Source: Eutreptiella sp. 'Long Island Sound 2002'
Lineage: Eukaryota > Protista > Euglenida
Assembly: GCA_964036045.1 (NCBI GenBank)
Contig: OZ038379.1
Span: 18,104,001 to 18,168,000, forward strand
DNA: 64,000 nucleotides
Direction: 5' to 3'
Shown here: one piece after another, positions 4,781 through 58,001 of the stretch
Numbering within the stretch: the stretch's first letter is position 1
Layout of the letters: each line of letters begins with the position of its first letter
Made by a program: the position numbers and the translations under genes
Notes under the pieces: model-generated
The model's database searches: none
What the model was told of the DNA's origin: nothing
Seen by the model: only the letters and a program-made list of their open reading frames with translations

Positions 4781-4912
4781 TCTCTGGCCGGCAGCCGTCG
4801 GTTGCCGGTAACTGCCCCACTGCCCACTACCCATATCACACCCACCAAACACCCCGGGCCTGCGGGAAAGCGGAGCCCACGTATTCCCCACCAGTTCTCG
4901 CGGCACACATAC

Positions 4913-7338: not shown

Positions 7339-7413
7339 CTTTCGATCCCCGTCTGCAATGGACTGGTTGAGGTCTTGGATGTGCTGCTGCTGCTGCTCCA
7401 CGAGCGTCTGCAC
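7339..7413 (-). CDS. Exon (VQTLVEQQQQHIQDLNQSIADGDRK)
   Basis: gttgtcccgcag|GTG acceptor; AAG|gtcaac is a weaker donor, so the 3' boundary is less certain; 75 nt, phase 0-0. Confidence 0.68.
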
Positions 7414-9581: not shown

Positions 9582-12500
9582 CTGCGCGAGTTCCGCATGC
9601 ACGCCAAGCGTCTCCGCATCGACCTTGGAGCACGCAGCCATGATCGCCAGCACGTCCTCGCGCTCCCACAGCCCCAGCCCTACCCGGACCATGAGCTCCT
9701 CCTCCTGCAGGGCCCACACGTGCTGCTCGTTCAGCTCCTGCGACTCAAACGCGGACGCCAGCGCCTCCAGCTCGCGGCCGTACAGCGTGCGCACCGCATC
9801 CACCTCCAGCCCCGGGTCCATCACGGGCCGGGCCCAGCCCGCACTGGCGACCCCCGCGGTGCCGGCAAGCGCCGCGGCCGCGATACCGACCGCCTCGAGG
9901 TGCTGCTCGGCGGCGAGCCCCGCACGCTGCAGCAGCGCGTCCTCAAGCAGGGCCCAGCGCTCCCGAGAAGGGGCGCCCAGGGGGCTAATGCCTGAGGCCT
10001 GCCGTGACAGCGGGGGCGTCATGGGGGAGCGCGGGCGCACGCCAAACTCCTCGTGTACCCGGTCCAGCTCCGTCATGTACATGTCGTAGGCCACCGCCAG
10101 CTCCTCCTGCAGTGACTCGTGCTGCTGGATGGCGTGCCATGCGGCAGCGCTGTGAAGCTGACCGGCAAGATCCAGAAGCGCCGTGCAGGCATCCTGCTCA
10201 AGGGCCGACCGCCACGTGGCCTCGTTGTACGCAACACGCAGAATATCGCACTGCGCAACGAGGGCCCGCAGCCTGCATTGACCTGTGGTGAGCTGCGTGG
10301 GAATGGCGCGAAGATCCTGCAAAACGCGTTCCCCGTCCGCCAAGAAAACAGCAGGGGCATCGAGGGAAGAAGGATCAAGAGAGGGGTGTTGAGCAGTGAG
10401 AGACGTGTGCAAGTGATTAAAAAGAGCTCGCACCCGATCCAGCTCGTCACGCTGCTCAGCATCGACCACCGCATGGTACTCACCCAGCTCCACACTGCTT
10501 CCCCTCTGGATCTCAAGCAAATCCAAATACTGCTCTTCGAGGATCCTGCAACGCGCAGTCCCTTCCTCCTCAAGCAGCAACAGCTCCACCACCTGCTGCT
10601 CCTTCGCTTGCAGCGACTCCGCAGCTGCACCCGCATCCTCTGAATGCGCAACCATCACCGCCTGTAGGCCACGGACCGCATCCACATGCTCGGTGTACTC
10701 GGCCTCCAGGATTTGCTGTCGCAATGCACGCTCCTCCGCAGCTAAGTCATTCAGCTCAAGCCTCTCCTCAAGCTCAGCAACTCTCTGCCGCATATGCGCG
10801 GTCTCTTGCTCCCACTCCGCATGCTGTCGGTCCTTGTCGGCCAGCTGCATCCGTACCTCCGAGTACTGGCTTTGTTGTGATTGCAGTGTCCCTTGTAGAC
10901 TCAACAGTTGCTGCCGCAGCATGGCCTCCGTCATCACGCCAGACGCCATCGTCACATCAAAGAAGTCGCTGCTCTCCGACTCCTCAATCTGCAGCCGCTC
11001 GCTGAGTTCACTGTTCCTCACGTCCCACAACTGCCGCTCCTGCGCAAGATTGGCGGCTGCCGCATCCAATTGTGCAGAAGCAAGCTCAACAGCCTGTTGA
11101 TAGTCGGTGGATGCAGCCGACAACGCACTCCGCAGGCCAGACATGTTGCCCAACAGCCAGCTGTCAGACGCTGCAATCAGGTCAATCACCTCGCTGTGTT
11201 CATCTTCCATCAGCTGTTGCCGTCCTGCAAGCTCTGTGGATGTCAGGTCACTCAGCAGCTTGGCATATCCAATCACGTCAACCCCATCCTGAATCTGCGT
11301 CTTCTCCAAGTCCAGATTGCAGTTTTCTGCAATCACATCTGCAAGCATAGTTTCCTTCTCAACCAGCAGTGACTCGAACGTACTGCCCCGTTGAGCTTGG
11401 GCTGCAGTATGCGTCTCGAAGGCCTCAAACTGCAATGACACCCTTGCCTCAGCTTCAGCCCTCTCCAGCATCAAGATCTCCTCCTGCTGCGATGCACGAG
11501 CAGATGCTGCAGCCGCTTCCTCAGTGAGTTCAACAACGCGCTTTTCTGATGCAGCTGCTGCCGCACTCACTTCAACAACGCGCTGCTGTACCTCGGCAAA
11601 TTCCATTTGCGTTTGCTGAAGCTTCACTGACAGCGACGCTACATCTGCCTCACTCGAACCGCTGTCTTCAACCGCATGCCCATCCAGTGCAGCTGACTCT
11701 GTACCCTGCTGCAGGGCACACGTCACACCCTCGTGATGCCATACGCCCAGCTTCTCCATAATGCTGCAGTACTCGTCTTGCACCATCGCCAAGCGGCTTC
11801 CAATCTCTGCATATTCCGCATCCATCTTGGTCTTTTCCTCGCCAGCCTGCAGAAGCCGCTGCTCAAGCTCTTCTAGCTTGAATGCTGCACTCACACGCAC
11901 ATCGTCCTTGTCCTGTATTTCCTCCTGCAGTCGAGCTGCACTATCACGTTGGGCATCCACAACCTCCTGCAGCCTGTTGAACAGGGCTTCTTGATCCTGC
12001 AAAGCACGCTGGTAATCAACAAGCTGCTGATCACGCAGCTCCGCCTGCCTCGCATGCTCCGAAACCGCTGCACTATGCTGAAGTGTCACCCATTCCATGC
12101 CCAAACCATGTCGGCATCGGTACTCCTCAGCGATCAACTCGCCCCGCTGCAGCGTCTCCTGCAGCTCCGTTTCAGATGCAGCGTGTTGCGCTCGCACCCG
12201 ATCCAGCTCGTCGCGCTGCTCAGCATCGACCACCGCATGGTACTCACCCAGCTCCACACTGCTTCCCCTCTGGATCTCAAGCAAATCCAAATACTGCTCT
12301 TCGAGGATCCTGCAACGCGCAGTCCCTTCCTCCTCAAGCAGCAACAGCTCCACCACCTGCTGCTCCTTCGCTTGCAGCGACTCCGCAGCTGCACCCGCAT
12401 CCTCTGAATGCGCAACCATCACCGCCTGTAGGCCACGGACCGCATCCACATGCTCGGTGTACTCGGCCTCCAGGATTTGCTGTCGCAATGCACGCTCCTC

Positions 12501-15500
12501 CGCAGCTAAGTCATTCAGCTCAAGCCTCTCCTCAAGCTCAGCAACTCTCTGCCGCATATGCGCGGTCTCTTGCTCCCACTCCGCATGCTGTCGGTCCTTG
12601 TCGGCCAGCTGCATCCGTACCTCCGAGTATTGGCTTTGTTGTGATTGCAGTGTCCCTTGTAGACTCAACAGTTGCTGCCGCAGCATGGCCTCCGTCATCA
12701 CGCCAGACGCCATCGTCACATCAAAGAAGTCGCTGCTCTCCGACTCCTCAATCTGCAGCCGCTCGCTGAGTTCACTGTTCCTCACGTCCCACAACTGCCG
12801 CTCCTGCGCAAGATTGGCGGCTGCCGCATCCAATTGTGCAGAAGCAAGCTCAACAGCCTGTTGATAGTCGGTGGATGCAGCCGACAACGCACTCCGCAGG
12901 CCAGACATGTTGCCCAACAGCCAGCTGTCAGACGCTGCAATCAGGTCAATCACCTCGCTGTGTTCATCTTCCATCAGCTGTTGCCGTCCTGCAAGCTCTG
13001 TGGATGTCAGGTCACTCAGCAGCTTGGCATATCCAATCACGTCAACCCCATCCTGAATCTGCGTCTTCTCCAAGTCCAGATTGCAGTTTTCTGCAATCAC
13101 ATCTGCAAGCATAGTTTCCTTCTCAACCAGCAGTGACTCGAACGTACTGCCCCGTTGAGCTTGGGCTGCAGTATGCGTCTCGAAGGCCTCAAACTGCAAT
13201 GACACCCTTGCCTCAGCTTCAGCCCTCTCAAGCATCAAGATCTCCTCCTGCTGCGATGCACGAGCAGATGCTGCAGCCGCTTCCTCAGTGAGTTCAACAA
13301 CGCGCTTTTCTGATGCAGCTGCTGCCGCACTCACTTCAACAACGCGCTGCTGTACCTCGGCAAATTCCATTTGCGTTTGCTGAAGCTTCACTGACAGCGA
13401 CGCTACATCTGCCTCACTCGAACCGCTGTCTTCAACCGCATGCCCATCCAGTGCAGCTGACTCTGTACCCTGCTGCAGGGCACACGTCACACCCTCGTGA
13501 TGCCATACGCCCAGCTTCTCCATAATGCTGCAGTACTCGTCTTGCACCATCGCCAGTCGGCTTCCAATCTCTGCATATTCCGCATCCATCTTGGTCTTTT
13601 CCTCGCCAGCCTGCAGAAGCCGCTGCTCAAGCTCTTCTAGCTTGAATGCTGCACTCACACGCACATCGTCCTTGTCCTGTATTTCCTCCTGCAGTCGAGC
13701 TGCACTATCACGTTGGGCATCCACAACCTCCTGCAGCCTGTTGAACAGGGCTTCTTGATCCTGCAAAGCACGCTGGTAATCAACAAGCTGCTGATCACGC
13801 AGCTCCGCCTGCCTCGCATGCTCCGAAACCGCTGCACTATGCTGAAGTGTCACCCATTCCATGCCCAAACCATGTCGGCATCGGTACTCCTCAGCGATCA
13901 ACTCGCCCCGCTGCAGCGTCTCCTGCAGCCCCGTTTCAGATGCAGCGTGTTGCGCTCGCACCCGATCCAGCTCGTCACGCTGCTCAGCATCGACCACCGC
14001 ATGGTACTCACCCAGCTCCACACTGCTTCCCCTCTGGATCTCAAGCAAATCCAAATACTGCTCTTCGAGGATCCTGCAACGCGCAGTCCCTTCCTCCTCA
14101 AGCAGCAACAGCTCCACCACCTGCTGCTCCTTCGCTTGCAGCGACTCCGCAGCTGCACCCACATCCTCTGAATGCGCAACCATCACCGCCTGTAGGCCAC
14201 GGACCGCATCCACATGCTCGGTGTACTCGGCCTCCAGGATTTGCTGTCGCAATGCACGCTCCTCCGCAGCTAAGTCATTCAGCTCAAGCCTCTCCTCAAG
14301 CTCAGCAACTCTCTGCCGCATATGCGCGTTCTCTTGCTCCCACTCCGCATGCTGTCGGTCCTTGTCGGCCAGCTGCATCCGTACCTCCGAGTATTGGCTT
14401 TGTTGTGATTGCAGTGTCCCTTGTAGACTCAACAGTTGCTGCCGCAGCATGGCCTCCGTCATCACGCCAGACGCCATCGTCACATCAAAGAAGTCGCTGC
14501 TCTCCGACTCCTCAATCTGCAGCCGCTCGCTGAGTTCACTGTTCCTCACGTCCCACAACTGCCGCTCCTGCGCAAGATTGGCTGCTGCCGCATCCAATTG
14601 TGCAGAAGCAAGCTCAACAGCCTGTTGATAGTCGGTGGATGCAGCCGACAACGCACTCCGCAGGCCAGACACGTTGCCCAACAGCCAGCTGTCAGACGCT
14701 GCAATCAGGTCAATCACCTCGCTGTGTTCATCTTCCATCAGCTGTTGCCGTCCTGCAAGCTCTGTGGATGTCAGGTCACTCAGCAGCTTGGCATATCCAA
14801 TCACGTCAACCCCATCCTGAATCTGCGTCTTCTCCAAGTCCAGATTGCAGTTTTCTGCAATCACATCTGCAAGCATAGTTTCCTTCTCAACCAGCAGTGA
14901 CTCGAACGTACTGCACCGTTGAGCTTGGGCTGCAGTATGCGTCTCGAAGGCCTCAAACTGCAATGACACCCTTGCCTCAGCTTCAGCCCTCTCCAGCATC
15001 AAGATCTCCTCCTGCTGCGATGCACGAGCAGATGCTGCAGCCGCTTCCTCAGTGAGTTCAACAACGCGCTTTTCTGATGCAGCTGCTGCCGCACTCACTT
15101 CAACAACGCGCTGCTGTACCTCGGCAAATTCCATTTGCGTTTGCTGAAGCTTCACTGACAGCGACGCTACATCTGCCTCACTCGAACCGCTGTCTTCAAC
15201 CGCATGCCCATCCAGTGCAGCTGACTCTGTACCCTGCTGCAGGGCACACGTCACACCCTCGTGATGCCATACGCCCAGCTTCTCCATAATGCTGCAGTAC
15301 TCGTCTTGCACCATCGCCAAGCGGCTTCCAATCTCTGCATATTCCGCATCCATCTTGGTCTTTTCCTCGCCAGCCTGCAGAAGCCGCTGCTCAAGCTCTT
15401 CTAGCTTGAATGCTGCACTCACACGCGCTTCGTCCTTGTCCTGTATTTCCTCCTGCAGTCGAGCTGCACTATCACGTTGGGCATCCACAACCTCCTGCAG

Positions 15501-18500
15501 CCTGTTGAACAGGGCTTCTTGATCCTGCAAAGCACGCTGGTAATCAACAAGCTGCTGATCACGCAGCTCCGCCTGCCTCGCATGCTCCGAAACCGCTGCA
15601 CTATGCTGAAGTGTCACCCATTCCATGCCCAAACCATGTCGGCATCGGTACTCCTCAGCGATCAACTCGCCCCGCTGCAACGTCTCCTGCAGCTCCGTTT
15701 CAGATGCAGCGTGTTGCGCTTGCACCCGATCCAGCTCGTCACGCTGCTCAGCATCGACCACCGCATGGTACTCACCCAGCTCCACACTGCTTCCCCTCTG
15801 GATCTCAAGCAAATCCAAATACTGCTCTTCGAGGATCCTGCAACGCGCAGTCCCTTCCTCCTCAAGCAGCAACAGCTCCACCACCTGCTGCTCCTTCGCT
15901 TGCAGCGACTCCGCAGCTGCACCCGCATCCTCTGAATGCGCAACCATCACCGCCTGTAGGCCACGGACCGCATCCACATCCTCAGTGTACTCGGCCTCCA
16001 GGATTTGCTGTCGCAATGCACGCTCCTCCGCAGCTAAGTCATTCAGCTCAAGCCTCTCCTCAAGCTCAGCAACTCTCTGCCGCATAAGCGCGTTCTCTTT
16101 CTCCCAAATCGACAGATCTCGGGCAAGATTGGCGGCTGCCGCATCCAATTGTGCAGAAGCAAGCTCAACAGCCTGTTGATAGTCGGTGGATGCAGCCGAC
16201 AACGCACTCCGCAGGCCAGACACGTTGCCCAACGGCCAGCTGTCAGACGCTGCAATCAGGTCAATCACCTCGCTGTGTTCATCTTCCATCAGCTGTTGCC
16301 GCACCGCAAGCTCTGTGGATGTCAGGTCACTCAGCAGCTTGGCATATCCAATCAGGTCAACCCCATCCTGGATCTGCGCCATCTCCTGCTGCAGCCTTCG
16401 GTTCTCATCAACCGCTTCTGACAGCATCCTGTCCTTCTCAATCAGCATTGATTCGTACGCAACAAATCGTTGCCCCTGCTCCTCACATCCCACCTGCATG
16501 CGTGCGTTCGACTCAGACATCTCCAGCATCCGCGCCTGCTGCTCTGCTACCTGAGCGCTCGCAGCAACGGCTCGCTCTGTCTGCTCAGTAACCTGCTGTT
16601 GCAACACATCATGCTCCATCTGTTGCTGCTGAACCACCAGCGACAGCGACGCAGCGCTCTCAGCACCACGCTCCAGCATCACCCATTCCATGCCCAAACC
16701 ATGTCGGCATCGGTACTCCTCAGCGATCAACTCGCCCCGCTGCAGCGTCTCCTGCAGCTCCGTTTCAGATGCAGCGTGTTGCGCTCGCACCCGATCCAGC
16801 TCGTCGCGCTGCTCAGCATCGACCACCGCATGGTACTCACCCAGCTCTACACTGCTTCCCCTCTGGATCTCAAGCAAATCCAAATACTGCTCTTCGAGGA
16901 TCCTGCAACGCGCAGTCCCTTCCTCCTCAAGCAGCAACAGCTCCACCACCTGCTGCTCCTTCGCTTGCAGCGACTCCGCAGCTGCACCCGCATCCTCTGA
17001 ATGCGCAACCATCACCGCCTGTAGGCCACGGACCGCATCCACATGCTCGGTGTACTCGGCCTCCAGGATTTGCTGTCGCAATGCACGCTCCTCCGCAGCT
17101 AAGTCATTCAGCTCAAGCCTCTCCTCAAGCTCAGCAACTCTCTGCCGCATATGCGCGGTCTCTTGCTCCCACTCCGCATGCTGTCGGTCCTTGTCGGCCA
17201 GCTGCATCCGTACCTCCGAGTACTGGCTTTGTTGTGATTGCAGTGTCCCTTGTAGACTCAACAGTTGCTGCCGCAGCATGGCCTCCGTCATCACGCCAGA
17301 CGCCATCGTCACATCAAAGAAGTCGCTGCTCTCCGACTCCTCAATCTGCAGCCGCTCGCTGAGTTCACTGTTCCTCACGTCCCACAACTGCCGCTCCTGC
17401 GCAAGATTGGCGGCTGCCGCATCCAATTGTGCAGAAGCAAGCTCAACAGCCTGTTGATAGTCGGTGGATGCAGCCGACAACGCACTCCGCAGGCCAGACA
17501 TGTTGCCCAACAGCCAGCTGTCAGACGCTGCAATCAGGTCAATCACCTCGCTGTGTTCATCTTCCATCAGCTGTTGCCGTCCTGCAAGCTCTGTGGATGT
17601 CAGGTCACTCAGCAGCTTGGCATATCCAATCACGTCAACCCCATCCTGAATCTGCGTCTTCTCCAAGTCCAGATTGCAGTTTTCTGCAATCACATCTGCA
17701 AGCATAGTTTCCTTCTCAACCAGCAGTGACTCGAACGTACTGCCCCGTTGAGCTTGGGCTGCAGTATGCGTCTCGAAGGCCTCAAACTGCAATGACACCC
17801 TTGCCTCAGCTTCAGCCCTCTCAAGCATCAAGATCTCCTCCTGCTGCGATGCACGAGCAGATGCTGCAGCCGCTTCCTCAGTGAGTTCAACAACGCGCTT
17901 TTCTGATGCAGCTGCTGCCGCACTCACTTCAACAACGCGCTGCTGTACCTCGGCAAATTCCATTTGCGTTTGCTGAAGCTTCACTGACAGCGACGCTACA
18001 TCTGCCTCACTCGAACCGCTGTCTTCAACCGCATGCCCATCCAGTGCAGCTGACTCTGTACCCTGCTGCAGGGCACACGTCACACCCTCGTGATGCCATA
18101 CGCCCAGTTTCTCCATAATGCTGCAGTACTCGTCTTGCACCATGGCCAATCGGCTTCCAATCTCTGCACATCCCACATCTTGCGTGAATCTGTCTGACGT
18201 GGTCGTCTGCTTCTGCAACACCTGGCACGCAGAGGCTATGACGCCCTGACAAAACAGTATGTCGTGGCATTCGGCTTCAGAGATTTCAGATCGGTAGGAG
18301 ATTTCGGCCATTTGAAGATCCCACAACTGCCGCTCCCTTGTGAGAAGCATCAGCAAGTCGTCCAGCGGGAGGTCAGAATCAACCGAGGAAGCCGACAACG
18401 CACTCCGCAGGCCAGACACGTTGCCCAACAGCCAGCTGTCAGACGCTGCAATCAGGTCAATCACCTCGCTGTGTTCATCTTCCATCAGCTGTTGCCGCAC

Positions 18501-21500
18501 CGCAAGCTCTGTGGATGCCAGATCACTCAGCAGCTTGGCATATCCAATCAGGTCAACCCCATCCTGGATCTGCGCCATCTCCTGCTGCAGCCTTCGGTTC
18601 TCATCAACCGCTTCTGACAGCATCCTGTCCTTCTCAATCAGCATTGATTCGTACGCAATAAATTGTTGCCCCTGCTCCTCACATCCCACCTGCATGCGTG
18701 CGTTCGCCTCAGACATCTCCAGCATCCGCGCCTGCTGCTCTGCTACCTGAGCGCTCGCAGCAACGGCTCGCTCTGTCTGCTCAGTAACCTGCTGTTGCAA
18801 CACATCATGCTCCATCTGTTGCTGCTGAACCACCAGCGACAGTGACGCAGCGCTCTCAGCACCACGCTCCAGCATCACCCATTCCATGCCCAAACCATGT
18901 CGGCATCGGTACTCCTCAGCGATCAACTCGCCCCGCTGCAGCGTCTCCTGCAGCTCCGTTTCAGATGCAGCGTGTTGCGCTCGCACCCGATCCAGCTCGT
19001 CACGCTGCTCAGCATCGACCACCGCATGGTACTCACCCAGCTCCACACTGCTTCCCCTCTGGATCTCAAGCAAATCCAAATACTGCTCTTCGAGGATCCT
19101 GCAACGCGCAGTCCCTTCCTCCTCAAGCAGCAACAGCTCCACCACCTGCTGCTCCTTCGCTTGCAGCGACTCCGCAGCTGCACCCGCATCCTCTGAATGC
19201 GCAACCATCACCGCCTGTAGGCCACGGACCGCATCCACATGCTCGGTGTACTCGGCCTCCAGGATTTGCTGTCGCAATGCACGCTCCTCCGCAGCTAAGT
19301 CATTCAGCTCAAGCCTCTCCTCAAGCTCAGCAACTCTCTGCCGCATATGCGCGTTCTCTTGCTCCCACTCCGCATGCTGTCGGTCCTTGTCGGCCAGCTG
19401 CATCCGTACCTCCGAGTATTGGCTTTGTTGTGATTGCAGTGTCCCTTGTAGACTCAACAGTTGCTGCCGCAGCATGGCCTCCGTCATCACGCCAGACGCC
19501 ATCGTCACATCAAAGAAGTCGCTGCTCTCCGACTCCTCAATCTGCAGCCGCTCGCTGAGTTCACTGTTCCTCACGTCCCACAACTGCCGCTCCTGCGCAA
19601 GATTGGCGGCTGCCGCATCCAATTGTGCAGAAGCAAGCTCAACAGCCTGTTGATAGTCGGTGGATGCAGCCGACAACGCACTCCGCAGGCCAGACACGTT
19701 GCCCAACAGCCAGCTGTCAGACGCTGCAATCAGGTCAATCACCTCGCTGTGTTCATCTTCCATCAGCTGTTGCCGCACTGCAAGCTCTGTGGATGTCAGG
19801 TCACTCAGCAGCTTGGCATATCCAATCACGTCAACCCCATCCTGAATCTGCGTCTTCTCCAAGTCCAGATTGCAGTTTTCTGCAATCACATCTGCAAGCA
19901 TAGTTTCCTTCTCAACCAGCAGTGACTCGAACGTACTGCACCGTTGAGCTTGGGCTGCAGTATGCGTCTCGAAGGCCTCAAACTGCAATGACACCCTTGC
20001 CTCAGCTTCAGCCCTCTCCAGCATCAAGATCTCCTCCTGCTGCGATGCACGAGCAGATGCTGCAGCCGCTTCCTCAGTGAGTTCAACAACGCGCTTTTCT
20101 GATGCAGCTGCTGCCGCACTCACTTCAACAACGCGCTGCTGTACCTCGGCAAATTCCATTTGCGTTTGCTGAAGCTTCACTGACAGCGACGCTACATCTG
20201 CCTCACTCGAACCGCTGTCTTCAACCGCATGCCCATCCAGTGCAGCTGACTCTGTACCCTGCTGCAGGGCACACGTCACACCCTCGTGATGCCATACGCC
20301 CAGCTTCTCCATAATGCTGCAGTACTCGTCTTGCACCATCGCCAGTCGGCTTCCAATCTCTGCATATTCCGCATCCATCTTGGTCTTTTCCTCGCCAGCC
20401 TGCAGAAGCCGCTGCTCAAGCTCTTCTAGCTTGAATGCTGCACTCACACGCGCTTCGTCCTTGTCCTGTATTTCCTCCTGCAGTCGAGCTGCACTATCAC
20501 GTTGGGCATCCACAACCTCCTGCAGCCTGTTGAACAGGGCTTCTTGATCCAGCACAGCACGCTGGTAATCAACAAGCTGCTGATCACGCAGCTCCGCCTG
20601 CCTCGCATGCTCCAAAACCGCTGCACTATGCTGAAGTGTCACCCATTCCATGCCCAAACCATGTCGGCATCGGTACTCCTCAGCGATCAACTCGCCCCGC
20701 TGCAACGTCTCCTGCAGCTCCGTTTCAGATGCAGCGTGTTGCGCTCGCACCCGATCCAGCTCGTCGCGCTGCTCAGCATCGACCACCGCATGGTACTCAC
20801 CCAGCTCCACACTGCTTCCCCTCTGGATCTCAAGCAAATCCAAATACTGCTCTTCGAGGATCCTGCAACGCGCAGTCCCTTCCTCCTCAAGCAGCAACAG
20901 CTCCACCACCTGCTGCTCCTTCGCTTGCAGCGACTCCGCAGCTGCACCCGCATCCTCTGAATGCGCAACCATCACCGCCTGTAGGCCACGGACCGCATCC
21001 ACATGCTCGGTGTACTCGGCCTCCAGGATTTGCTGTCGCAATGCACGCTCCTCCGCAGCTAAGTCATTCAGCTCAAGCCTCTCCTCAAGCTCAGCAACTC
21101 TCTGCCGCATATGCGCGGTCTCTTGCTCCCACTCCGCATGCTGTCGGTCCTTGTCGGCCAGCTGCATCCGTACCTCCGAGTATTGGCTTTGTTGTGATTG
21201 CAGTGTCCCTTGTAGACTCAACAGTTGCTGCCGCAGCATGGCCTCCGTCATCACGCCAGACGCCATCGTCACATCAAAGAAGTCGCTGCTCTCCGACTCC
21301 TCAATCTGCAGCCGCTCGCTGAGTTCACTGTTCCTCACGTCCCACAACTGCCGCTCCTGCGCAAGATTGGCTGCTGCCGCATCCAATTGTGCAGAAGCAA
21401 GCTCAACAGCCTGTTGATAGTCGGTGGATGCAGCCGACAACGCACCCCGCAGGCCAGACACGTTGCCCAACAGCCAGCTGTCAGACGCTGCAATCAGGTC

Positions 21501-45500: not shown

Positions 45501-48500
45501 ACTCAGCAGCTTGGCATATCCAACCAGATCCACCCCATCCTGGATCTGCGCCATCTCCTGCTGCAGCCTTCGGTTCTCATCAACCGCTTCTGACAGCATC
45601 CTGTCCTTCTCAATCAGCATTGATTCGTACGCAACAAATCGTTGCCCCTGCTCCTCACATCCCACCTGCATGCGTGCGTTCGACTCAGACATCTCCAGCA
45701 TCCGCGCCTGCTGCTCTGCTACCTGAGCGCTCGCAGCAACGGCTCGCTCTGTCTGCTCAGTAACCTGCTGTTGCAACACATCATGCTCCATCTGTTGCTG
45801 CTGAACCACCAGCGACAGTGACGCAGCGCTTTCAGCGCCACGCTCCAGCATCACCCATTCCATGCCCAAACCATGTCGGTATCGGTACTCCTCAGCGATC
45901 AACTCGCCCCGCTGCAACGTCTCCTGCAGCTCCGTTTCAGATGCAGCGTGTTGCGCTCGCACCCGATCCGGCTCGTCGCGCTGCTCAGCATCGACCACCG
46001 CATGGTACTCACCCAGCTCCACACTGCTTCCCCTCTGGATCTCAAGCAAATCCAAATACTGCTCTTCGAGGATCCTGCAACGCGCAGTCCCTTCCTCCTC
46101 AAGCAGCAACAGCTCCACCACCTGCTGCTCCTTCGCTTGCAGCGACTCCGCAGCTGCACCCGCATCCTCTGAATGCGCAACCATCACCGCCTGTAGGCCA
46201 CGGACCGCATCCACATGCTCGGTGTACTCGGCCTCCAGGATTTGCTGTCGCAATGCACGCTCCTCCGCAGCTAAGTCATTCAGCTCAAGCCTCTCCTCAA
46301 GCTCAGCAACTCTCTGCCGCATATGCGCGGTCTCTTGCTCCCACTCCGCATGCTGTCGGTCCTTGTCGGCCAGCTGCATCCGTACCTCCGAGTACTGGCT
46401 TTGTTGTGATTGCAGTGTCCCTTGTAGACTCAACAGTTGCTGCCGCAGCATGGCCTCCGTCATCACGCCAGACGCCATCGTCACATCAAAGAAGTCGCTG
46501 CTCTCCGACTCCTCAATCTGCAGCCGCTCGCTGAGTTCACTGTTCCTCACGTCCCACAATTGTCGGTTGCTAACAACGGTCATGGCTGCTGCATCCTCAA
46601 ACGCAGAGGCAATCAGAACAGCTTGCTGGAAATCAGATGATGTCGCTGCCAACGCACGCCGCAGGCCAGACACGTTGCCCAACAGCCAGCTGTCAGACGC
46701 TGCAATCAGGTCAATCACCTCGCTGTGTTCATCTTCCATCAGCTGTTGCCGCACCGCAAGCTCTGTGGATGTCAGGTCACTCAGCAGCTTGGCATATCCA
46801 ATCACGTCAACCCCATCCTGAATCTGCGTCTTCTCCTGCTGCAGCCTTCGGTTCTCATCAACCGCTTCTGACAGCATAGTTTCCTTCTCAACCAGCAGTG
46901 ACTCGAACGTACTGCACCGTTGAGCTTGGGCTGCAGTATGCGTCTCGAAGGCCTCAAACTGCAATGACACCCTTGCCTCAGCTTCAGCCCTCTCAAGCAT
47001 CAAGATCTCCTCCTGCTGCGATGCACGAGCAGATGCTGCAGCCGCTTCCTCAGTGAGTTCAACAACGCGCGTTTCTGATGCAGCTGCTGCCGCACTCACT
47101 TCAACAACGCGCTGCTGTACCTCGGCAAATTCCATTTGCGTTTGCTGAAGCTTCACTGACAGCGACGCTACATCTGCCTCACTCGAACTGCTGTCTTCAA
47201 CCGCATGCCCATCCAGTGCAGCTGACTCTGTACCCTGCTGCAGGGCACACGTCACACCCTCGTGATGCCATACGCCCAGCTTCTCCATAATGCTGCAGTA
47301 CTCGTCTTGCACCATCGCCAGTCGGCTTCCAATCTCTGCATATTCCGCATCCATCTTGGTCTTTTCCTCGCCAGCCTGCAGAAGCCGCTGCTCAAGCTCT
47401 TCTAGCTTGAATGCTGCACTCACACGCGCTTCGTCCTTGTCCTGTATTTCCTCCTGCAGTCGAGCTGCACTATCACGTTGGGCATCCACAACCTCCTGCA
47501 GCCTGTTGAACAGAGCTTCTTGATCCTGCAAAGCACGCTGGTAATCAACAAGCTGCTGATCACGCAGCTCCGCCTGCCTCGCATGCTCCGAAACCGCTGC
47601 ACTATGCTGAAGTGTCACCCATTCCATGCCCAAACCATGTCGGCATCGGCACTCCTCAGCGATCAACTCGCCCCGCTGCAACGTCTCCTGCAGCTCCGTT
47701 TCAGATGCAGCGTGTTGCGCTCGCACCCGATCCAGCTCGTTGCGCTGCTCAGCATCGACCACCGCATGGTACTCAACCAGCTCCACACTGCTTCCCCTCT
47801 GGATCTCAAGCAAATCCAAATACTGCTCTTCGAGGATCCTGCAACGCGCAGTCCCTTCCTCCTCAAATAGCAACAGCTCCACCACCTGCTGCTCCTTCGT
47901 TTGCAGGTACTCCGCAGCTGCACCCGCATCCTCAGCCACTGTTCCAGTCGCGTCACGCATTTGAATGGCACCTGTCTTCCAATACTCCCTGTCCGAAAGT
48001 GCCGTTGCCAATTGCTGTTTCAATGTGTCGATCTCAGCCCTGTGATGCACTTTATCACTTTCCAACTGGTCAATGTAACCAAGAAGCATTACCTTCTCGT
48101 CTCCAAGGCGACGAAGAAGTGTTGTGCTCGTACATGATACGTCAACAGCAAAAGCCACATGAGAAACAGACAGCCCGACCCGGTGTTCTAACTCCTGGAT
48201 CTGTAAATGGCAACATGCCGTATTGTTCTGCAGTCCTGCAATCTGTCCCCGCAACCCCGTGTTGACTGCCTGGACATCCCTCAGCTGCGTCTCAACGTCG
48301 ACTGTCATTTGCTGTTGCCCTGCCAGCTGCTGCTGCAGGGCCGCTTGCACTTCAGCAATCTGTCCTCGATCACTGTGCATTGCACGAGTCAAAGCTCTGT
48401 GTATTGTGCTGAAGGCATCCGCAGTACCAGCCCCCTCAGATCCCCATATATTAAGACGGCTGCTCGCCTCAGATTCTTGGAAGCGCATCCAGTGTTCTTG

Positions 48501-51500
48501 AAGTGTCCGGGTCGCTTCAAACGCATGTCCCAGCTCTTCAATCTCCTCCTGATACACTGCAGACCCTGCTTGCATCTGGGCTTGTGCCTCCAGCAGCTGC
48601 ACGTCTGCTCGCACAGCGTGCTGCTGCAAAGCTGAGTGTAGCTGACCAGCAATGCTGATCAACTCTCCTCCCTCTTCCTGGATCACCTGCATCCTTTCCT
48701 GTAGGTTTTGGTGTTCCAGGTCCAGCTGTTGAGCGATGCCCTGCCTCTCCTTTCCCGTTTCTTGTTCTTCTTGCAACTTCTGAATGGTGCTGTCCCTCTC
48801 CTGTAAATCATGCTGCATCTCATTCCACGCCTTCTGCGCTTGCTCCGCCTCTCGTTGCGCATCACGTAAAGCCGTGTTCCGCCCCCCGAGCTCCTGTTGC
48901 AGGTCTGCTAGAGCCCGGTACGAGGCTGCGGCATGCCTTTGATGCTGCGAAAGCATGGTTGCAGCAATGCCAACCCTTGCGTTGGACTCCTGTGCCTGTA
49001 CCCAAGCTCGTCCAGAGATTTCCCCTCCCACAATATCGAACACATTCATAGCTTGCCGCTGCTGCATTTGCGTCGTTGGTGCCGCTGACCCTTCACCCAC
49101 TGGTATTCTTTCCTGTTCAAACACCCGTAACTTCTGCAACATGTCAGTGTTCTCCTCTCGTGCTCGGATCAACTCTACTTCAGTTGCGGCCAGCGTGTCT
49201 CGGAGGCTTTGAAGCGTGTCCTCCAGCCCACGGACTTGCCTGTTCCGCTCTTCAACATCGCCAACCAGTGTCTGGTTTGCATGCTGCAGCTGATCAACCA
49301 GGGCCATATTCCTGATTCCAACCGTTGCCAGTAGGGCTTGGGCTTCAAGCTCTGCCAGGGCCGCCCGGTCCTGACTCTCACTGAGCTGCAGTTGCACGCA
49401 TTGCTGCTCAAACGCCTTGGATGCCTCAACGGCACTTCCAAGCTCCTCAACCTCCATGCAGTACATCGCAGACAGCTCGTTGTACTGCAACGTCACGCCG
49501 CTCAGCATTTGAAGCGAGATGGCAGACAAACGCCTGCTCTCCTCCTCAATGATCTGCATGCGTTCAGTCAGTTCCCTCTGCATTAGCACCCAGTCCATTT
49601 CCTCCCGAGCAGCTGACAAACTGCTTTCCTGCTGCGTCACTATACCTCCTTCCTCTAACCGCCCTCCTGTCGTGGAAACTCGGCTCGTACCCCGTGACCG
49701 GGTGGCCAGATTCAAAGCATCCGGCTGTTCCTGCTGCATGATCCCCATCCTTGCACTGAGCTCCGCATTTCTCAGCATCAGAGACGCCTTATCTTGCTGC
49801 AGTCCTGCAATCTGTCCCCGCAACCCCGTGTTGACTGCCTGGACATCCCTCAGCTGCGTCTCAACGTCGACTGTCATTTGCTGTTGCCCTGCCAGCTGCT
49901 GCTGCAGGGCCGCTTGCACTTCAGCAATCTGTCCTCGATCACTGTGCATTGCACGAGTCAAAGCTCTGTGTATTGTGCTGAAGGCATCCGCAGTACCAGC
50001 CCCCTCAGATCCCCATATATTAAGACGGCTGCTCGCCTCAGATTCTTGGAAGCGCATCCAGTGTTCTTGAAGTGTCCGGGTCGCTTCAAACGCATGTCCC
50101 AGCTCTTCAATCTCCTCCTGATACACTGCAGACCCTGCTTGCATCTGGGCTTGTGCCTCCAGCAGCTGCACGTCTGCTCGCACAGCGTGCTGCTGCAAAG
50201 CTGAGTGTAGCTGACCAGCAATGCTGATCAACTCTCCTCCCTCTTCCTGGATCACCTGCATCCTTTCCTGTAGGTTTTGGTGTTCCAGGTCCAGCTGTTG
50301 AGCGATGCCCTGCCTCTCCTTTCCCGTTTCTTGTTCTTCTTGCAACTTCTGAATGGTGCTGTCCCTCTCCTGTAAATCATGCTGCATCTCATTCCACGCC
50401 TTCTGCGCTTGCTCCGCCTCTCGTTGCGCATCACGTAAAGCCGTGTTCCGCCCCCCGAGCTCCTGTTGCAGGTCTGCTAGAGCCCGGTACGAGGCTGCGG
50501 CATGCCTTTGATGCTGCGAAAGCATGGTTGCAGCAATGCCAACCCTTGCGTTGGACTCCTGTGCCTGTACCCAAGCTCGTCCAGAGATTTCCCCTCCCAC
50601 AATATCGAACACATTCATAGCTTGCCGCTGCTGCATTTGCGTCGATGGTGCCGCTGACCCTTCACCCACTGGTATTCTTTCCTGTTCAAACACCCGTAAC
50701 TTCTGCAACATGTCAGTGTTCTCCTCTCGTGCTCGGATCAACTCTACTTCAGTTGCGGCCAGCGTGTCTCGGAGGCTTTGAAGCGTGTCCTCCAGCCCAC
50801 GGACTTGCCTGTTCCGCTCTTCAACATCGCCAACCAGTGTCTGGTTTGCATGCTGCAGCTGATCAACCAGGGCCATATTCCTGATTCCAACCGTTGCCAG
50901 TAGGGCTTGGGCTTCAAGCTCTGCCAGGGCCGCCCGGTCCTGACTCTCACTGAGCTGCAGTTGCACGCATTGCTGCTCAAACGCCTTGGATGCCTCAACG
51001 GCACTTCCAAGCTCCTCAACCTCCATGCAGTACATCGCAGACAGCTCGTTGTACTGCAACGTCACGCCGCTCAGCATTTGAAGCGAGATGGCAGACAAAC
51101 GCCTGCTCTCCTCCTCAATGATCTGCATGCGTTCAGTCAGTTCCCTCTGCATTAGCACCCAGTCCATTTCCTCCCGAGCAGCTGACAAACTGCTTTCCTG
51201 CTGCGTCACTATACCTCCTTCCTCTAACCGCCCTCCTGTCGTGGAAACTCGGCTCGTACCCCGTGACCGGGTGGCCAGATTCAAAGCATCCGGCTGTTCC
51301 TGCTGCATGATCCCCATCCTTGCACTGAGCTCCGCATTTCTCAGCATCAGAGACGCCTTATCTTGCTGCAGTCCTGCAATCTGTCCCCGCAACCCCGTGT
51401 TGACTGCCTGGACATCCCTCAGCTGCGTCTCAACGTCGACTGTCATTTGCTGTTGCCCTGCCAGCTGCTGCTGCAGGGCCGCTTGCACTTCAGCAATCTG

Positions 51501-54500
51501 TCCTCGATCACTGTGCATTGCACGAGTCAAAGCTCTGTGTATTGTGCTGAAGGCATCCGCAGTACCAGCCCCCTCAGATCCCCATATATTAAGACGGCTG
51601 CTCGCCTCAGATTCTTGGAAGCGCATCCAGTGTTCTTGAAGTGTCCGGGTCGCTTCAAACGCATGTCCCAGCTCTTCAATCTCCTCCTGATACACTGCAG
51701 ACCCTGCTTGCATCTGGGCTTGTGCCTCCAGCAGCTGCACGTCTGCTTGCACAGCGTGCTGCTGCAAAGCTGAGTGTAGCTGACCAGCAATGCTGATCAA
51801 CTCTCCTCCCTCTTCCTGGATCACCTGCATCCTTTCCTGTAGGTTTTGGTGTTCCAGGTCCAGCTGTTGAGCGATGCCCTGCCTCTCCTTTCCCGTTTCT
51901 TGTTCTTCTTGCAACTTCTGAATGGTGCTGTCCCTCTCCTGTAAATCATGCTGCATCTCATTCCACGCCTTCTGCGCTTGCTCCGCCTCTCGTTGCGCAT
52001 CACGTAAAGCCGTGTTCCGCCCCCCGAGCTCCTGTTGCAGGTCTGCTAGAGCCCGGTATGAGGCTGCGGCATGCCTTTGATGCTGCGAAAGCATGGTTGC
52101 AGCAATGCCAACCCTTGCGTTGGACTCCTGTGCCTGTACCCAAGCTCGTCCAGAGATTTCCCCTCCCACAATATCGAACACATTCATAGCTTGCCGCTGC
52201 TGCATTTGCGTCGATGGTGCCGCTGACCCTTCACCCACTGGTATTCTTTCCTGTTCAAACACCCGTAACTTCTGCAACATGTCAGTGTTCTCCTCTCGTG
52301 CTCGGATCAACTCTACTTCAGTTGCGGCCAGCGTGTCTCGGAGGCTTTGAAGCGTGTCCTCCAGCCCACGGACTTGCCTGTTCCGCTCTTCAACATCGCC
52401 AACCAGTGTCTGGTTTGCATGCTGCAGCTGATCAACCAGGGCCATATTCCTGATTCCAACCGTTGCCAGTAGGGCTTGGGCTTCAAGCTCTGCCAGGGCC
52501 GCCCGGTCCTGACTCTCACTGAGCTGCAGTTGCACGCATTGCTGCTCAAACGCCTTGGATGCCTCAACGGCACTTCCAAGCTCCTCAACCTCCATGCAGT
52601 ACATCGCAGACAGCTCGTTGTACTGCAACGTCACGCCGCTCAGCATTTGAAGCGAGATGGCAGACAAACGCCTGCTCTCCTCCTCAATGATCTGCATGCG
52701 TTCAGTCAGTTCCCTCTGCATTAGCACCCAGTCCATTTCCTCCCGAGCAGCTGACAAACTGCTTTCCTGCTGCGTCACTATACCTCCTTCCTCTAACCGC
52801 CCTCCTGTCGTGGAAACTCGGCTCGTACCCCGTGACCGGGTGGCCAGATTCAAAGCATCCGGCTGTTCCTGCTGCATGATCCCCATCCTTGCACTGAGCT
52901 CCGCATTTCTCAGCATCAGAGACGCCTTATCTTGCTGCAGTCCTGCAATCTGTCCCCGCAACCCCGTGTTGACTGCCTGGACATCCCTCAGCTGCGTCTC
53001 AACGTCGACTGTCATTTGCTGTTGCCCTGCCAGCTGCTGCTGCAGGGCCGCTTGCACTTCAGCAATCTGTCCTCGATCACTGTGCATTGCACGAGTCAAA
53101 GCTCTGTGTATTGTGCTGAAGGCATCCGCAGTACCAGCCCCCTCAGATCCCCATATATTAAGACGGTTGCTCGCCTCAGATTCTTGGAAGCGCATCCAGT
53201 GTTCTTGAAGTGTCCGGGTCGCTTCAAACGCATGTCCCAGCTCTTCAATCTCCTCCTGATACACTGCAGACCCTGCTTGCATCTGGGCTTGTGCCTCCAG
53301 CAGCTGCACGTCTGCTCGCACAGCGTGCTGCTGCAAAGCTGAGTGTAGCTGACCAGCAATGCTGATCAACTCTCCTCCCTCTTCCTGGATCACCTGCATC
53401 CTTTCCTGTAGGTTTTGGTGTTCCAGGTCCAGCTGTTGAGCGATGCCCTGCCTCTCCTTTCCCGTTTCTTGTTCTTCTTGCAACTTCTGAATGGTGCTGT
53501 CCCTCTCCTGTAAATCATGCTGCATCTCATTCCACGCCTTCTGCGCTTGCTCCGCCTCTCGTTGCGCATCACGTAAAGCCGTGTTCCGCCCCCCGAGCTC
53601 CTGTTGCACGTCTGCTAGAGCCCGGTACGAGGCTGCGGCATGCCTTTGATGCTGCGAAAGCATGGTTGCAGCAATGCCAACCCTTGCGTTGGACTCCTGT
53701 GCCTGTACCCAAGCTCGTCCAGAGATTTCCCCTCCCACAATATCGAACACATTCATAGCTTGCCGCTGCTGCATTTGCGTCGTTGGTGCCGCTGACCCTT
53801 CACCCACTGGTATTCTTTCCTGTTCAAACACCCGTAACTTCTGCAACATGTCAGTGTTCTCCTCTCGTGCTCGGATCAACTCTACTTCAGTTGCGGCCAG
53901 CGTGTCTCGGAGGCTTTGAAGCGTGTCCTCCAGCCCACGGACTTGCCTGTTCCGCTCTTCAACATCGCCAACCAGTGTCTGGTTTGCATGCTGCAGCTGA
54001 TCAACCAGGGCCATATTCCTGATTCCAACCGTTGCCAGTAGGGCTTGGGCTTCAAGCTCTGCCAGGGCCGCCCGGTCCTGACTCTCACTGAGCTGCAGTT
54101 GCACGCATTGCTGCTCAAACGCCTTGGATGCCTCAACGGCACTTCCAAGCTCCTCAACCTCCATGCAGTACATCGCAGACAGCTCGTTGTACTGCAACGT
54201 CACGCCGCTCAGCATTTGAAGCGAGATGGCAGACAAACGCCTGCTCTCCTCCTCAATGATCTGCATGCGTTCAGTCAGTTCCCTCTGCATTAGCACCCAG
54301 TCCATTTCCTCCCGAGCAGCTGACAAACTGCTTTCCTGCTGCGTCACTATACCTCCTTCCTCTAACCGCCCTCCTGTCGTGGAAACTCGGCTCGTACCCC
54401 GTGACCGGGTGGCCAGATTCAAAGCATCCGGCTGTTCCTGCTGCATGATCCCCATCCTTGCACTGAGCTCCGCATTTCTCAGCATCAGAGACGCCTTATC

Positions 54501-56456
54501 TTGCTGCAGTCCTGCAATCTGTCCCCGCAACCCCGTGTTGACTGCCTGGACATCCCTCAGCTGCGTCTCAACGTCGACTGTCATTTGCTGTTGCCCTGCC
54601 AGCTGCTGCTGCAGGGCCGCTTGCACTTCAGCAATCTGTCCTCGATCACTGTGCATTGCACGAGTCAAAGCTCTGTGTATTGTGCTGAAGGCATCCGCAG
54701 TACCAGCCCCCTCAGATCCCCATATATTAAGACGGCTGCTCGCCTCAGATTCTTGGAAGCGCATCCAGTGTTCTTGAAGTGTCCGGGTCGCTTCAAACGC
54801 ATGTCCCAGCTCTTCAATCTCCTCCTGATACACTGCAGACCCTGCTTGCATCTGGGCTTGTGCCTCCAGCAGCTGCACGTCTGCTCGCACAGCGTGCTGC
54901 TGCAAAGCTGAGTGTAGCTGACCAGCAATGCTGATCAACTCTCCTCCCTCTTCCTGGATCACCTGCATCCTTTCCTGTAGGTTTTGGTGTTCCAGGTCCA
55001 GCTGTTGAGCGATGCCCTGCCTCTCCTTTCCCGTTTCTTGTTCTTCTTGCAACTTCTGAATGGTGCTGTCCCTCTCCTGTAAATCATGCTGCATCTCATT
55101 CCACGCCTTCTGCGCTTGCTCCGCCTCTCGTTGCGCATCACGTAAAGCCGTGTTCCGCCCCCCGAGCTCCTGTTGCAGGTCTGCTAGAGCCCGGTACGAG
55201 GCTGCGGCATGCCTTTGATGCTGCGAAAGCATGGTTGCAGCAATGCCAACCCTTGCGTTGGACTCCTGTGCCTGTACCCAAGCTCGTCCAGAGATTTCCC
55301 CTCCCACAATATCGAACACATTCATAGCTTGCCGCTGCTGCATTTGCGTCGATGGTGCCGCTGACCCTTCACCCACTGGTATTCTTTCCTGTTCAAACAC
55401 CCGTAACTTCTGCAACATGTCAGTGTTCTCCTCTCGTGCTCGGATCAACTCTACTTCAGTTGCGGCCAGCGTGTCTCGGAGGCTTTGAAGCGTGTCCTCC
55501 AGCCCACGGACTTGCCTGTTCAAGCCCTGAATGGACTTGTCTCGGCCTTCGACCTCACTTTGAAGGGCTGTCACCTGGGCCTCGGAGCCGTCCAAGGTTG
55601 TTCCCAGCAGCGCACACTTCTGCAGCAGCTGGCCCTCGGACTCCCGCACGTTCCCCAGGTCCCTGATATGCTCGTTGATTCTCCTCTGCTTCTCCTGCAC
55701 CTCCAAAGTCCTCTGCGCCACTGTACCATGCAGCTGCGCCACCTCCCCTTGCACTGCCGCGTGCTGCGCAGAGGCAGCGGACAGGTCACTTTCCAGTGCG
55801 CCCACCGCCGAGCGCAGCTCCTGCAGTTCTTTGCTGAGCATCGAGGTCACCTGCGAGTGCCCTGCACGCCCTAAGTGCACGATCTGGTCGTGCATGTCAT
55901 GGAACGCCTGCAGCCGCCCTTTGGCCTCCATCTCCATGATCTCTTCCCGGTCCGCCTGTAACGCCTTGTTCCGCTCCCAGAGCGCCCCCATCTGCTCCAT
56001 CTGCAGCGAAAGCCGCACACACGCCTGGTCCCTGTCCTCCAGCAGCTTTTGCGCCTCCTCGGACACCAGGCGCTGCTGGGCCAGCGCCTTCTCCAGCTCC
56101 CGCATCTGCTGCTGCGTCTCCGCAGCCACAACCGCCACCCCCGCAGACTGCAACGGGCCAGTGGTCCCGGACTGGGCACATCGCGTCACCAGAGATCCCC
56201 AGTCCTCGAAAGCCTCCTCCGCGATACTCAGGCGTTGTGACATTTCGGTCACCAGCAGCGCCGGGCTGACTGCCGCATATACATCCGCGCGGCCCGCACC
56301 ATTCGCCAGCAAGGCGGCGGTGTACACATGGTGCATGTCAGACACGGTGACGCTGCGGTGCCGGGACTGAGACGCGTCTCCCTTTTGCGGTACCAGCCCC
56401 TTCGGGGGCGCGCCTGCAGATCTTGGGGCCCCTGGTCCAGACGGCGGAGGGATCAC
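9582..56456 (-). CDS. Giant 46,875-nt coding exon (15,625 aa) of a repetitive coiled-coil protein
   Basis: Lies inside the stop-free ORF 9279..56486. cgttctcatcgcag|GTG ATC acceptor at 56456 and GCG CAG|gtgcgt donor at 9582; length divisible by 3, phase 0-0, matching both neighbouring exons. Coiled-coil composition stops abruptly at the predicted donor. Confidence 0.92.
10426..47933 (-). repeat. Coding tandem array B: 26 full units plus 1 truncated unit of 1,278 nt (426 aa, short) or 1,764 nt (588 aa, long)
   Basis: Marker atgcccaaaccatg recurs at 47626, 45862, then every 1,278 nt down to 27970, then at 26713, 24949, 23692, 21928, 20650, 18886, 16690, 15625, 13861 and 12097. Confidence 0.95.
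48229..55520 (-). repeat. Coding tandem array A: about 4.6 copies of a 1,569-nt (523-aa) unit
   Basis: Identical shadow ORFs recur at 48389, 49958, 51527, 53096 and 54665 (exact 1,569 spacing); only a few substitutions are visible between copies (PST/PTT, ADL/ADV, VRA/VQA, SSR/SNR). Confidence 0.95.
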
Positions 56457-58001
56457 CTGCGATGAGAACGACGTGTACCTGAGCAAGCCCCTTTTTTAGC
56501 GACGGGGGCGGGGGGTTGGGGGGGGCATGTCCTGGAGGGCGGGCAATTTTTGAGGGCAGGCACTGCCTATGTCCTACCGGGGCCGAATGGGGGTCCAGCC
56601 CATGTGGCAGGCACCCACTGACCATGATACAGAGGGGCCAACCTCCATATCTGATATACAATGACCAACAGGTGACTTGTAGTTCGGACAGCCAAAAAAT
56701 CCTGACCACTGTTAGCCTACCCGCTACCCCTCCCTGCGTGGGGGGGGGGGGGGGGTTCTGGAGGAAGCACCAACCGTTTGAAAAAAACGCAAGCATTCCC
56801 CCGCGGCTATGGGACACCGATGCGTGCGCACGAACATGTTCCGCGAGGCACAAGAGATGTGATGCAAAGAAAAGTCCAAGAGGGCTAGATGGCTACATAA
56901 CCCCAACAGTTTGGGGGGTTCCCAATGCTTCAGAGCGAGGGACAAACTTAAAGGTGGCCCACACGCCGGCCCGGTGGCCACATAACCCCTACCGCCTGGG
57001 GGGTCCCCAAAACTGGTTCTGATGTTGCGCATTGCAACACCGCTAGTTCAAGTACGTGAATAGAACCCTTCACACGGAAAGCCCGCATACCCTCGCTACC
57101 AGTGGATGTCTTTGAAGATATGTCTTGTAAATTGGATGTAGTGGAACTATCTCAACTGGAGGACCTAGAAGCGGTGGTGGCACTGCCATTGGAAACAGAT
57201 CCCCAACCCCTAGATCAGCTTGTGTCATCGCGGAAACCTTCTGGATCAGGAACTTCATATGGGTGACGCTCTAGACACCACTTCTTCGTTGCAGCAAGCA
57301 ATCCACCATAGGATACCTTGTTCAATCAGTTGTGGTGCCTCTTGCACAAGAGGGGATCTTCAGTGACATGCCATGGGCGCGTTTCATGAAAAACAACTAC
57401 ACACTCAGAGAGCCCCCCCCCCCCCCTTGGGGCATCCAATCCACGAAACGCTCAGCGAGATCCCTATTTCAGGCAAGACATAGCTTATGGCAAAGCAATG
57501 ATCCTTCTAAACAGGCTTGCAACGCATGCACACATGCCTGTGGCGCTTGCGCATGTGCACACTAACACAGAGAGCTCAATAGCATCAGGGCTGAACCTTT
57601 TGATCAGCGAAGGCCAGGCAGTAAGAATCCAAACGAAATTATGTATCTGGCCCGGTCTCTGGCCCATAATCCGGTCTAGGCCCATACACGAGCAGTGCTC
57701 TCAGCGAGGAGCCATATGCCGGCATATGCGTGCACACACACATGCAAACCTGCACACACATATCCATCTCTTCCCGATCCAAATAATGCGCAGGGACTAC
57801 TCCACATGCCTACGCTGCCGCACGCAACGCCCAATGGAACCTCTACTTTTGCGGAAGCATGAGCGCCCTTTTGGCACACGCGGGGCTGGCACGACCATGT
57901 GCCACACCCTCACTGAGCGCCCACAATCCCATGCCGACCCAGTCCCCTTTCCCCACCACATCATGAGCAGAGCCGAGGTTGGAAACTGTCTGACACAATA
58001 C

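Follow-up and report, generated by a model that had tools for sequence, protein, structure and literature searches.

A predicted 46.9-kb coding exon composed largely of near-identical tandem repeats in the euglenid Eutreptiella

Results

Structure of the giant open frame

In the genome of Eutreptiella sp. 'Long Island Sound 2002' (assembly GCA_964036045.1), a stretch of 64,000 nucleotides (nt) of contig OZ038379.1 (positions 18,104,001 to 18,168,000; hereafter the window, to which all coordinates refer unless another contig is named) is occupied for the most part by one repeat-rich open reading frame (ORF). The ORF listing of the window showed a single stop-free frame of 15,735 codons on the minus strand, running from 56486 to 9279, and no further ORF of at least 400 codons. 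The giant stop-free stretch is thus confirmed at the DNA level. Since about 1,900 codons of it are non-redundant and one frame alone is open, the open frame is not due to chance. Most of the frame is predicted to form one internal coding exon (Table 1). The earlier note on this DNA had described a stop-free frame between a canonical acceptor at 56456 and a canonical donor at 9582, in phase with small flanking exons, and the sequence at the borders agrees: the acceptor reads tcatcgcag/GTG, the donor reads GCGCAG/gtgcgt, and both ends follow the GT-AG consensus in phase with the neighboring coding exons. The preceding exon closes at 58002 in phase 0 (CAG/gtattg), and the downstream exon at 7413–7339 begins in phase 0 after gtcccgcag. 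The assignment as an exon with exactly these borders is a prediction from the splice-site sequences.

The predicted exon product begins with a unique part of about 305 residues, which is followed by about 4.67 alpha units, a 99-residue linker, 27 beta/gamma units and a unique end of about 290 residues. The alpha units differ from each other by 0–5 nt and are arranged in the order a, b, c, a, partial. The beta/gamma array opens with a gamma unit, which is followed by 15 beta units and then by gamma–beta pairs and runs of gamma units. Nineteen of its units are of the beta type (426 amino acids (aa), 1,278 nt; this length is exact in 17), and eight, one of them partial, are of the gamma type (581–588 aa), whose middle part is longer and different. 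Two units, near exon aa 12,560–12,800 and 13,330–13,460, are rearranged. The units are 99–100% identical, and the beta units form two subfamilies distinguished mainly by one 33-codon patch. Beta units 1–3 are an exact copy of units 4–6; the longest exact repeat of the exon measures 4,193 nt, its two copies being offset by 3,834 nt (38592..46618), and no other exact repeat exceeds 1.9 kb. The multiplicity of 31-mers in the beta/gamma array was 23–27. Tandem Repeats Finder, when run on the window, missed the array, the periods of which exceed 500 nt. The proposal of the earlier note that the exon grew by intra-exonic tandem duplication is supported by the identity of the units, the exact three-unit duplication, the gamma–beta higher-order repeats and a difference of one alpha unit between two assemblies (described below).

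Table 1. Coordinates of the giant open frame, its predicted gene structure and related sequences
Feature	Position	Strand	Remarks
Complete open frame	9279..56486	-	15,735 codons, first possible start to stop
Predicted giant coding exon	9582..56456	-	46,875 nt = 15,625 codons; basis: splice-site sequence, phase, codon periodicity
Unique N-terminal part of exon	55542..56456	-	~305 codons; Pro/Gly/Ser-rich at start; GC3 0.78
Alpha array	48231..55541 (approximate borders)	-	~4.67 units of 1,569 nt = 523 aa
Unique linker between arrays	47934..48230	-	99 codons; open; low codon-bias score; GC2 0.40
Beta/gamma array	10450..47933	-	27 units
Exact three-unit block duplication	38592..46618	-	period 3,834 nt
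Unique C-terminal part of exon	9582..10449	-	~290 codons; helical with breaks; GC3 0.77; motif copies
Predicted upstream intron	56457..58001	-	1,545 nt, gtattg...tcatcgcag; GC even across codon positions; poly-G/C runs inside
Predicted upstream exon	58002..58381	-	380 nt; coding score 83–93; two motif copies
Further upstream exon-like coding segment	62439..62612 (approximate borders)	-	one motif copy
Predicted downstream intron	7414..9581	-	gtgcgt...gtcccgcag, 2,168 nt
Predicted small exon	7339..7413	-	75 nt, 25 codons; then AAG/gtcaac
Further downstream exon-like segments	~6276–6078, 5156–4914, 2987–2656, 2056–1625, 552–385 (approximate borders)	-	predicted to belong to one gene with the giant exon
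Exon-like segments after the 2,053-codon frame	L007 9941–10225, 11008–12186, 12759–13421, 16163–16552		
Dispersed unit fragments	L001:1137–2575, L001:8131–11588, L002:8374–10824		ERZ25074135 contigs ctg10759_30x_l, ctg9601_49x_l

GC2 and GC3, GC content at second and third codon positions.

A recurrent helical motif links the exon to its neighbors

An iterative profile search revealed a new motif of 25 residues with the consensus QERQTWALVEAELQARLQLMEEEHAA and the core W-x-L-x3-E-x3-R-h-x-h-h-x-E-E (h, hydrophobic), in which the Arg is invariant and one Glu near-invariant. The motif is common to the alpha, beta and gamma units, which are otherwise little alike, and is also found in the unique C-terminal end. 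The exon product contains 122 motif copies and the non-redundant parts contain 57, compared with none in ten shuffles, and the spacing is irregular (63–146 residues). Copies were likewise detected in four of the small flanking exons tested (58002–58381, 62439–62612, 6267–6067 and 5165–4908). A second large open frame of the gene (L007:3166–9327, corresponding to L005:3420–9581 on the minus strand) lies about 2.1 kb past window position 1; this frame of 2,053 codons (6.2 kb) is internally repetitive, with a repeat of about 229 residues, and contains about 30 motif copies. Because the motif recurs in all of them, the giant exon, the flanking exons and the 2,053-codon frame are taken as one gene of one protein design, and this recurrence is the strongest argument that the DNA is coding. 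Traced through exon-like segments of a second assembly, the gene is predicted to extend past the window to a span of 83 kb or more, with about 19,000 codons.

Coding signals in the array

GC content by codon position was about 0.70/0.37/0.60–0.67 in the array, compared with flat values of 0.53–0.59 in the introns. Scored with a codon table derived from the flanking exons, the first alpha unit and the unique exon start, the open frame had a log-likelihood of +0.57 per codon, and the two alternative frames had -0.55 and -0.73. Variants among the beta units comprised 33 synonymous changes (877 possible) and 47 nonsynonymous changes (2,957 possible). A stop codon could have arisen by 181 changes, and none of these was present. 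Between the beta subfamilies, the nonsynonymous rate (dN) was 0.026 and the synonymous rate (dS) was 0.081. All variants in unit length and spacing are multiples of 3.

Fragments of array units, 1.4–3.5 kb in length and 91–96% identical in nucleotides (82–95% in protein), were also found at other loci of the second assembly, where they are frame-shifted. One of them adjoins an RNase H ORF and several PEPCK fragments that stand in a row and lack introns. To judge by these sequences, pieces of the gene have been copied to other loci and have decayed there.

Recovery of the locus in a second assembly

Using two flank ORFs as anchors, we recovered the locus in a second public assembly (European Nucleotide Archive (ENA) ERZ25074135), on the 1.40-Mb contig ctg10635_40x_l. 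The downstream 12.9 kb showed no mismatch and a single 1-nt gap relative to the window, and no difference was seen in the upstream flank or over the initial 6 kb of the exon. The gene caller of ERZ25074135 reported one product of 16,248 residues, which starts at the GTG corresponding to window position 56456 and shares its stop with the window frame. Read from the same GTG, the window frame encodes 15,725 residues, that is, 523 residues or one alpha unit less. The spacing of the flank anchors was 57,063 nt in ERZ25074135 and 55,493 nt in the window, and the difference of 1,570 nt equals one alpha unit plus a 1-nt indel. These two differences indicate that the beta/gamma arrays are equal in length and that the alpha array of ERZ25074135 has one more unit; there, the alpha order is a, b, c, c, followed by more alpha sequence past the retrieved stretch.

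Array length was also examined by word depth in short-read contigs of two genomic DNA runs. Depth over the array segment 10450–10606 was about 1,400, compared with 14.8 (run X1) and 34.8 (run X3) for the adjoining single-copy contig. The segment thus stands at 94 times the single-copy depth in X1 and at about 41 times in X3, and the window contains 26 copies of it. Since the depth exceeds the number of assembled copies, there is no sign that the array was over-expanded during assembly, a concern that had been raised in the earlier note. Extra exact copies of the segment must exist somewhere, and may lie in other haplotypes or other arrays.

Reads at the predicted borders and intron composition

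Contigs of two genomic DNA runs passed the donor at 9582 unbroken, and genomic depth was even over the single-copy parts of the introns and the exon. In estuary metatranscriptomes of 2022 (runs X8–X10), only the multi-copy array part matched (window 10426–10700). One of the matching contigs (1,179 nt) had 1 mismatch in 275 nt, so that the libraries included this organism or a strain very close to it, or its DNA. A match to the array is expected from transcript and from DNA carry-over alike, and was not counted as support for expression. Transcription of the gene and use of both junctions are therefore presented here as predictions.

The introns within window 1–9581 and 56457–64000 contain 33 homopolymeric G or C runs of at least 7 nt (for example at 640, 935, 3501, 3763, 4139, 5987, 7570, 7970, 8808, 56740 and 59670, and, as C, at 57413), and the 46.9-kb exon contains none. 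Twelve of the 33 are 13–18 nt long and lack conserved flanks; 11 of these 12 are G on the plus strand and would be poly(C) in the pre-mRNA. It is precisely at such runs that short-read contigs break or jump, and the adjacent word depth is several to several hundred times that of single-copy sequence.

The predicted product and the search for relatives

The exon product would have a mass of 1.75 MDa and a pI of 4.46, and is rich in Glu (13%), Ala (13%), Leu (12%) and Gln (11%) and low in Lys and Pro; the whole gene product would reach roughly 2 MDa. Hydrophobic residues recur with a period of 3.5–3.6, and strong enrichment at heptad positions a and d was seen in 7–14% of 28-residue windows, compared with 3–6% after shuffling. 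These values bear on a possible two-stranded coiled-coil rod of the myosin or rootletin type, for which long uninterrupted heptads are expected. If the product formed one continuous helix, its length would be 2.3 μm.

An exhaustive phmmer search with 1,176 residues against 1.84 billion representative proteins returned four matches, all of them fragments from the second assembly of the same organism. No part matched Pfam, spectrin included, at E≤0.01, and no significant match came from sequence searches of PDB and the protein Atlas. The motif profile had a single marginal match in PDB, to residues 249–272 of the PRC1 rod (E 0.0012, 22 bits). A Foldseek search with an AlphaFold2 model of the beta unit found nothing below E 2.5, and Rfam gave no match over the window. 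Three candidate affiliations found no support. A centrin-binding repeat of the Sfi1/GSBP type was dismissed, as there were no matches to [FLW]xxW[KR] and only 2 of 146 Trp residues were followed by Lys or Arg. A spectrin-repeat protein did not fit either: in addition to the negative Pfam result, the motif spacing is 63–146 residues and not 106, and the helices of the low-confidence AlphaFold2 model measure 53–107 residues. The giant cytoskeletal repeat family of kinetoplastids (FAZ10, FLAM3, ClpGM6) showed no detectable homology by phmmer and word searches.

Discussion

We propose that the locus is a real, very large coding gene, most of which is probably contained in one 46.9-kb exon, and that it encodes an orphan protein of modular, all-helical design that may act as a micrometer-sized scaffold. 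The product would be an acidic, all-alpha-helical protein built from one short helical motif. Blocks of motif-bearing modules would have been amplified inside the exon by unequal crossing-over. This would have produced the near-identical 523-residue and 426/588-residue units, whose copy number would still be changing. By analogy with the giant repeat scaffolds of other protists, to which it would not be related, the product may serve as a micrometer-scale structural scaffold or tether of the cytoskeleton, in which the repeated motif could offer many equivalent binding or packing sites. A bolder version is possible but rather doubtful: an internal exon of about 47 kb, among the longest known, would be transcribed and translated into a new family of about 2 MDa and 19,000 residues, whose more than 150 motif docking sites would make it a micrometer-long ruler, or an elastic scaffold, in the cortex or the flagellar apparatus of the euglenid cell, with a repeat number that varies by haplotype.

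Several observations weigh against a large, expressed scaffold gene. No transcript splice joints were seen at 58002>56456 or 9582>7413, the runs that contain the locus (X1, X3 and X11) being genomic DNA. A word-based search of 5.8 billion proteins with the unique C-terminal part, the N-terminal part and a 10,000-residue reference judged by its unique end found no transcript-derived protein and returned the decayed dispersed copies alone, and contigs of Joint Genome Institute (JGI) metagenomes gave no match by protein scan or by an exact 29-nt junction pattern. The dN/dS ratio of 0.3–0.4 points to moderate constraint at most. GC3 was 0.60–0.67 in the repeat units, compared with 0.77–0.78 in the unique exon ends and 0.80–0.89 in the small exons, and the absence of stops from the array could in part reflect the youth of near-identical units. 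As to the protein itself, the heptad signal is weak, the AlphaFold2 model of a beta unit (five long helices) is of low confidence (predicted local distance difference test (pLDDT) 66, predicted template-modeling score (pTM) 0.27), and the function of the predicted scaffold is argued by analogy. The AlphaFold2 model of the unique C-terminal part (pLDDT 38) was too poor for a structure search. The fold is predicted no further than helical. Finally, the two assemblies may share reads.

Another explanation would be that the array is a young, intact amplification of a coding piece that is not, or no longer, translated, that is, satellite-like DNA in a gene or in a dying gene, whose frame was inherited from the founding unit and not selected. 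The near-identity of the units, a GC3 below that of the neighboring exons, the dN/dS ratio, the lack of homologs in all protein searches and of any transcript-derived protein or contig, and the spread and decay of unit pieces elsewhere are all in keeping with such an origin. We nevertheless regard it as unlikely, because openness is not confined to the young copies: older, diverged layers are open as well, alpha and beta units having just the motif in common, and so are the two rearranged units and the unique ends and linker, which have coding composition. Moreover, the motif, invariant Arg included, is retained in the next exon of 2,053 codons, length variants are in frame without exception, and the 46.9 kb contain no stop, whereas the dispersed copies, at 82–95% identity, are frame-shifted. 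It is also conceivable, though quite improbable, that the DNA is coding but divided into several exons, with nonconventional introns or repeat-to-repeat splicing removing parts, so that the mRNAs carry fewer units. Exon definition is an argument from vertebrates. The statement of the earlier note that exon definition across about 47 kb poses an unusual splicing problem is accordingly uninformative here, all the more since most Euglena introns are nonconventional: in Euglena agilis, 71.8% of introns are of this kind, cannot be recognized by GT-AG and are removed by unknown machinery (PMC12501133). This proportion itself speaks for hidden introns, as do the many equivalent cryptic sites that identical units would offer, the fact that continuity of the frame is read in genomic DNA, and short dips of the codon score at exon aa 2724–2780 (the linker), ~12,685–12,735 and 15,309–15,383. 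Yet codon periodicity is unbroken in every unit type, and none of the 60-codon windows in the beta/gamma units looks non-coding; an intron inside the open frame would need to lack stops and to have a length that is a multiple of 3, and the 46.9 kb contain none of the poly-G/C runs that are typical of the introns of this gene (33 in 17 kb of flanks). On composition, hidden nonconventional introns inside the frame thus appear unlikely.

An assembly artefact, in which near-identical units of 1.3–1.6 kb were mis-joined and gave an inflated or wrong array length, is the explanation to which we attach very little weight. It could account for the identity of beta units 1–3 with 4–6 and of alpha unit 1 with alpha unit 4, and for the one alpha unit that separates the two assemblies, and array length is known from assemblies and short-read depth. 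However, the length of the beta/gamma array agrees to the base in both assemblies, the longest exact repeat of 4.2 kb and the others of 1.9 kb or less are within reach of accurate long reads, and a depth of 41–94 against 26 assembled copies indicates that the true copy number is no lower than the assembled one.

If the locus is the large coding gene that we propose, it can be compared with other genes in which eukaryotes with spliceosomal introns carry tens of kilobases of coding sequence in one uninterrupted stretch. The longest human coding exons, in TTN and MUC16, are about 17–22 kb, the PKZILLA-1 gene of Prymnesium parvum is about 137 kb, and tex1 of T. virens is reportedly a continuous ORF of 62.8 kb. 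The comparison with TTN and MUC16 in the earlier note was fair, in that the present exon is about twice as long, but the exon is not a record, because fungal peptaibol synthetase genes reach 60–70 kb, the TratS gene measuring 69.6 kb (PMC12547593). PKZILLA-1 has 17 exons and is backed by ribosomal RNA-depleted RNA sequencing for the junctions and by exon-unique peptides (bioRxiv 10.1101/2024.01.29.577497). These long genes encode multi-domain enzymes, mucin or Ig/FN3 arrays, whereas the present locus would encode an orphan helical repeat in an internal exon between predicted introns of 1.5 and 2.2 kb.

Among giant proteins of protists, GSBP1 and GSBP2 of the ciliate Spirostomum minus (13,125 and 17,974 residues, 1.46 and 2.0 MDa) match in size class, and resemble the exon product in having high-identity tandem regions and a short motif at regular intervals (PMC9946354). 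They are thought to build filaments longer than 2 μm, and their BLAST homologs are confined to close relatives (PMC9946354). Their motif, however, is Sfi1-like, ends in W-R/K and is spaced by 69 residues, and they have no sequence similarity to the exon product; they are backed by Nanopore reads, mass spectrometry and partner binding, whereas the exon product is predicted from DNA. FAZ10 of trypanosomatids belongs to the same phylum, Euglenozoa, and is likewise a giant, repeat-rich cytoskeletal protein (PMC5358337). It consists of coiled coil with 52 near-identical repeats of 35 residues and runs at about 2,000 kDa, compared with an annotated 502 kDa, its repeats being hard to assemble (PMC5358337). 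In contrast to this 35-residue repeat, the units described here have 426–588 residues; no similarity was detected, and the question of exon length is moot in kinetoplastids, whose genes lack introns. Rods of the spectrin-repeat and PRC1 types share long acidic helical modules and a conserved tryptophan near the helix start, but there is no Pfam match to spectrin, the spacing is an irregular 63–146 residues and not 106, and the PRC1 match is short and marginal. Overall, we rate the locus as a real and unusual gene, which would found a new protein family within a known class, the giant repeat scaffolds, and the exon as unusual but not a record.

The difference of one unit between the assemblies suggests that the array is still changing in length. 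Standard annotation misses genes of this type; in the genome paper of Euglena gracilis, the average coding sequence is 1,149 bp (PMC11252322). The unique linker and the exon ends would provide specific targets for antibodies, tagging and CRISPR, which is available in Euglena, by which the protein could be located. If it is expressed, the product and its exon would be among the largest proteins and the longest internal exons described, and would represent a new lineage-restricted scaffold family in a group of organisms whose cell-shape machinery is little known in molecular terms.

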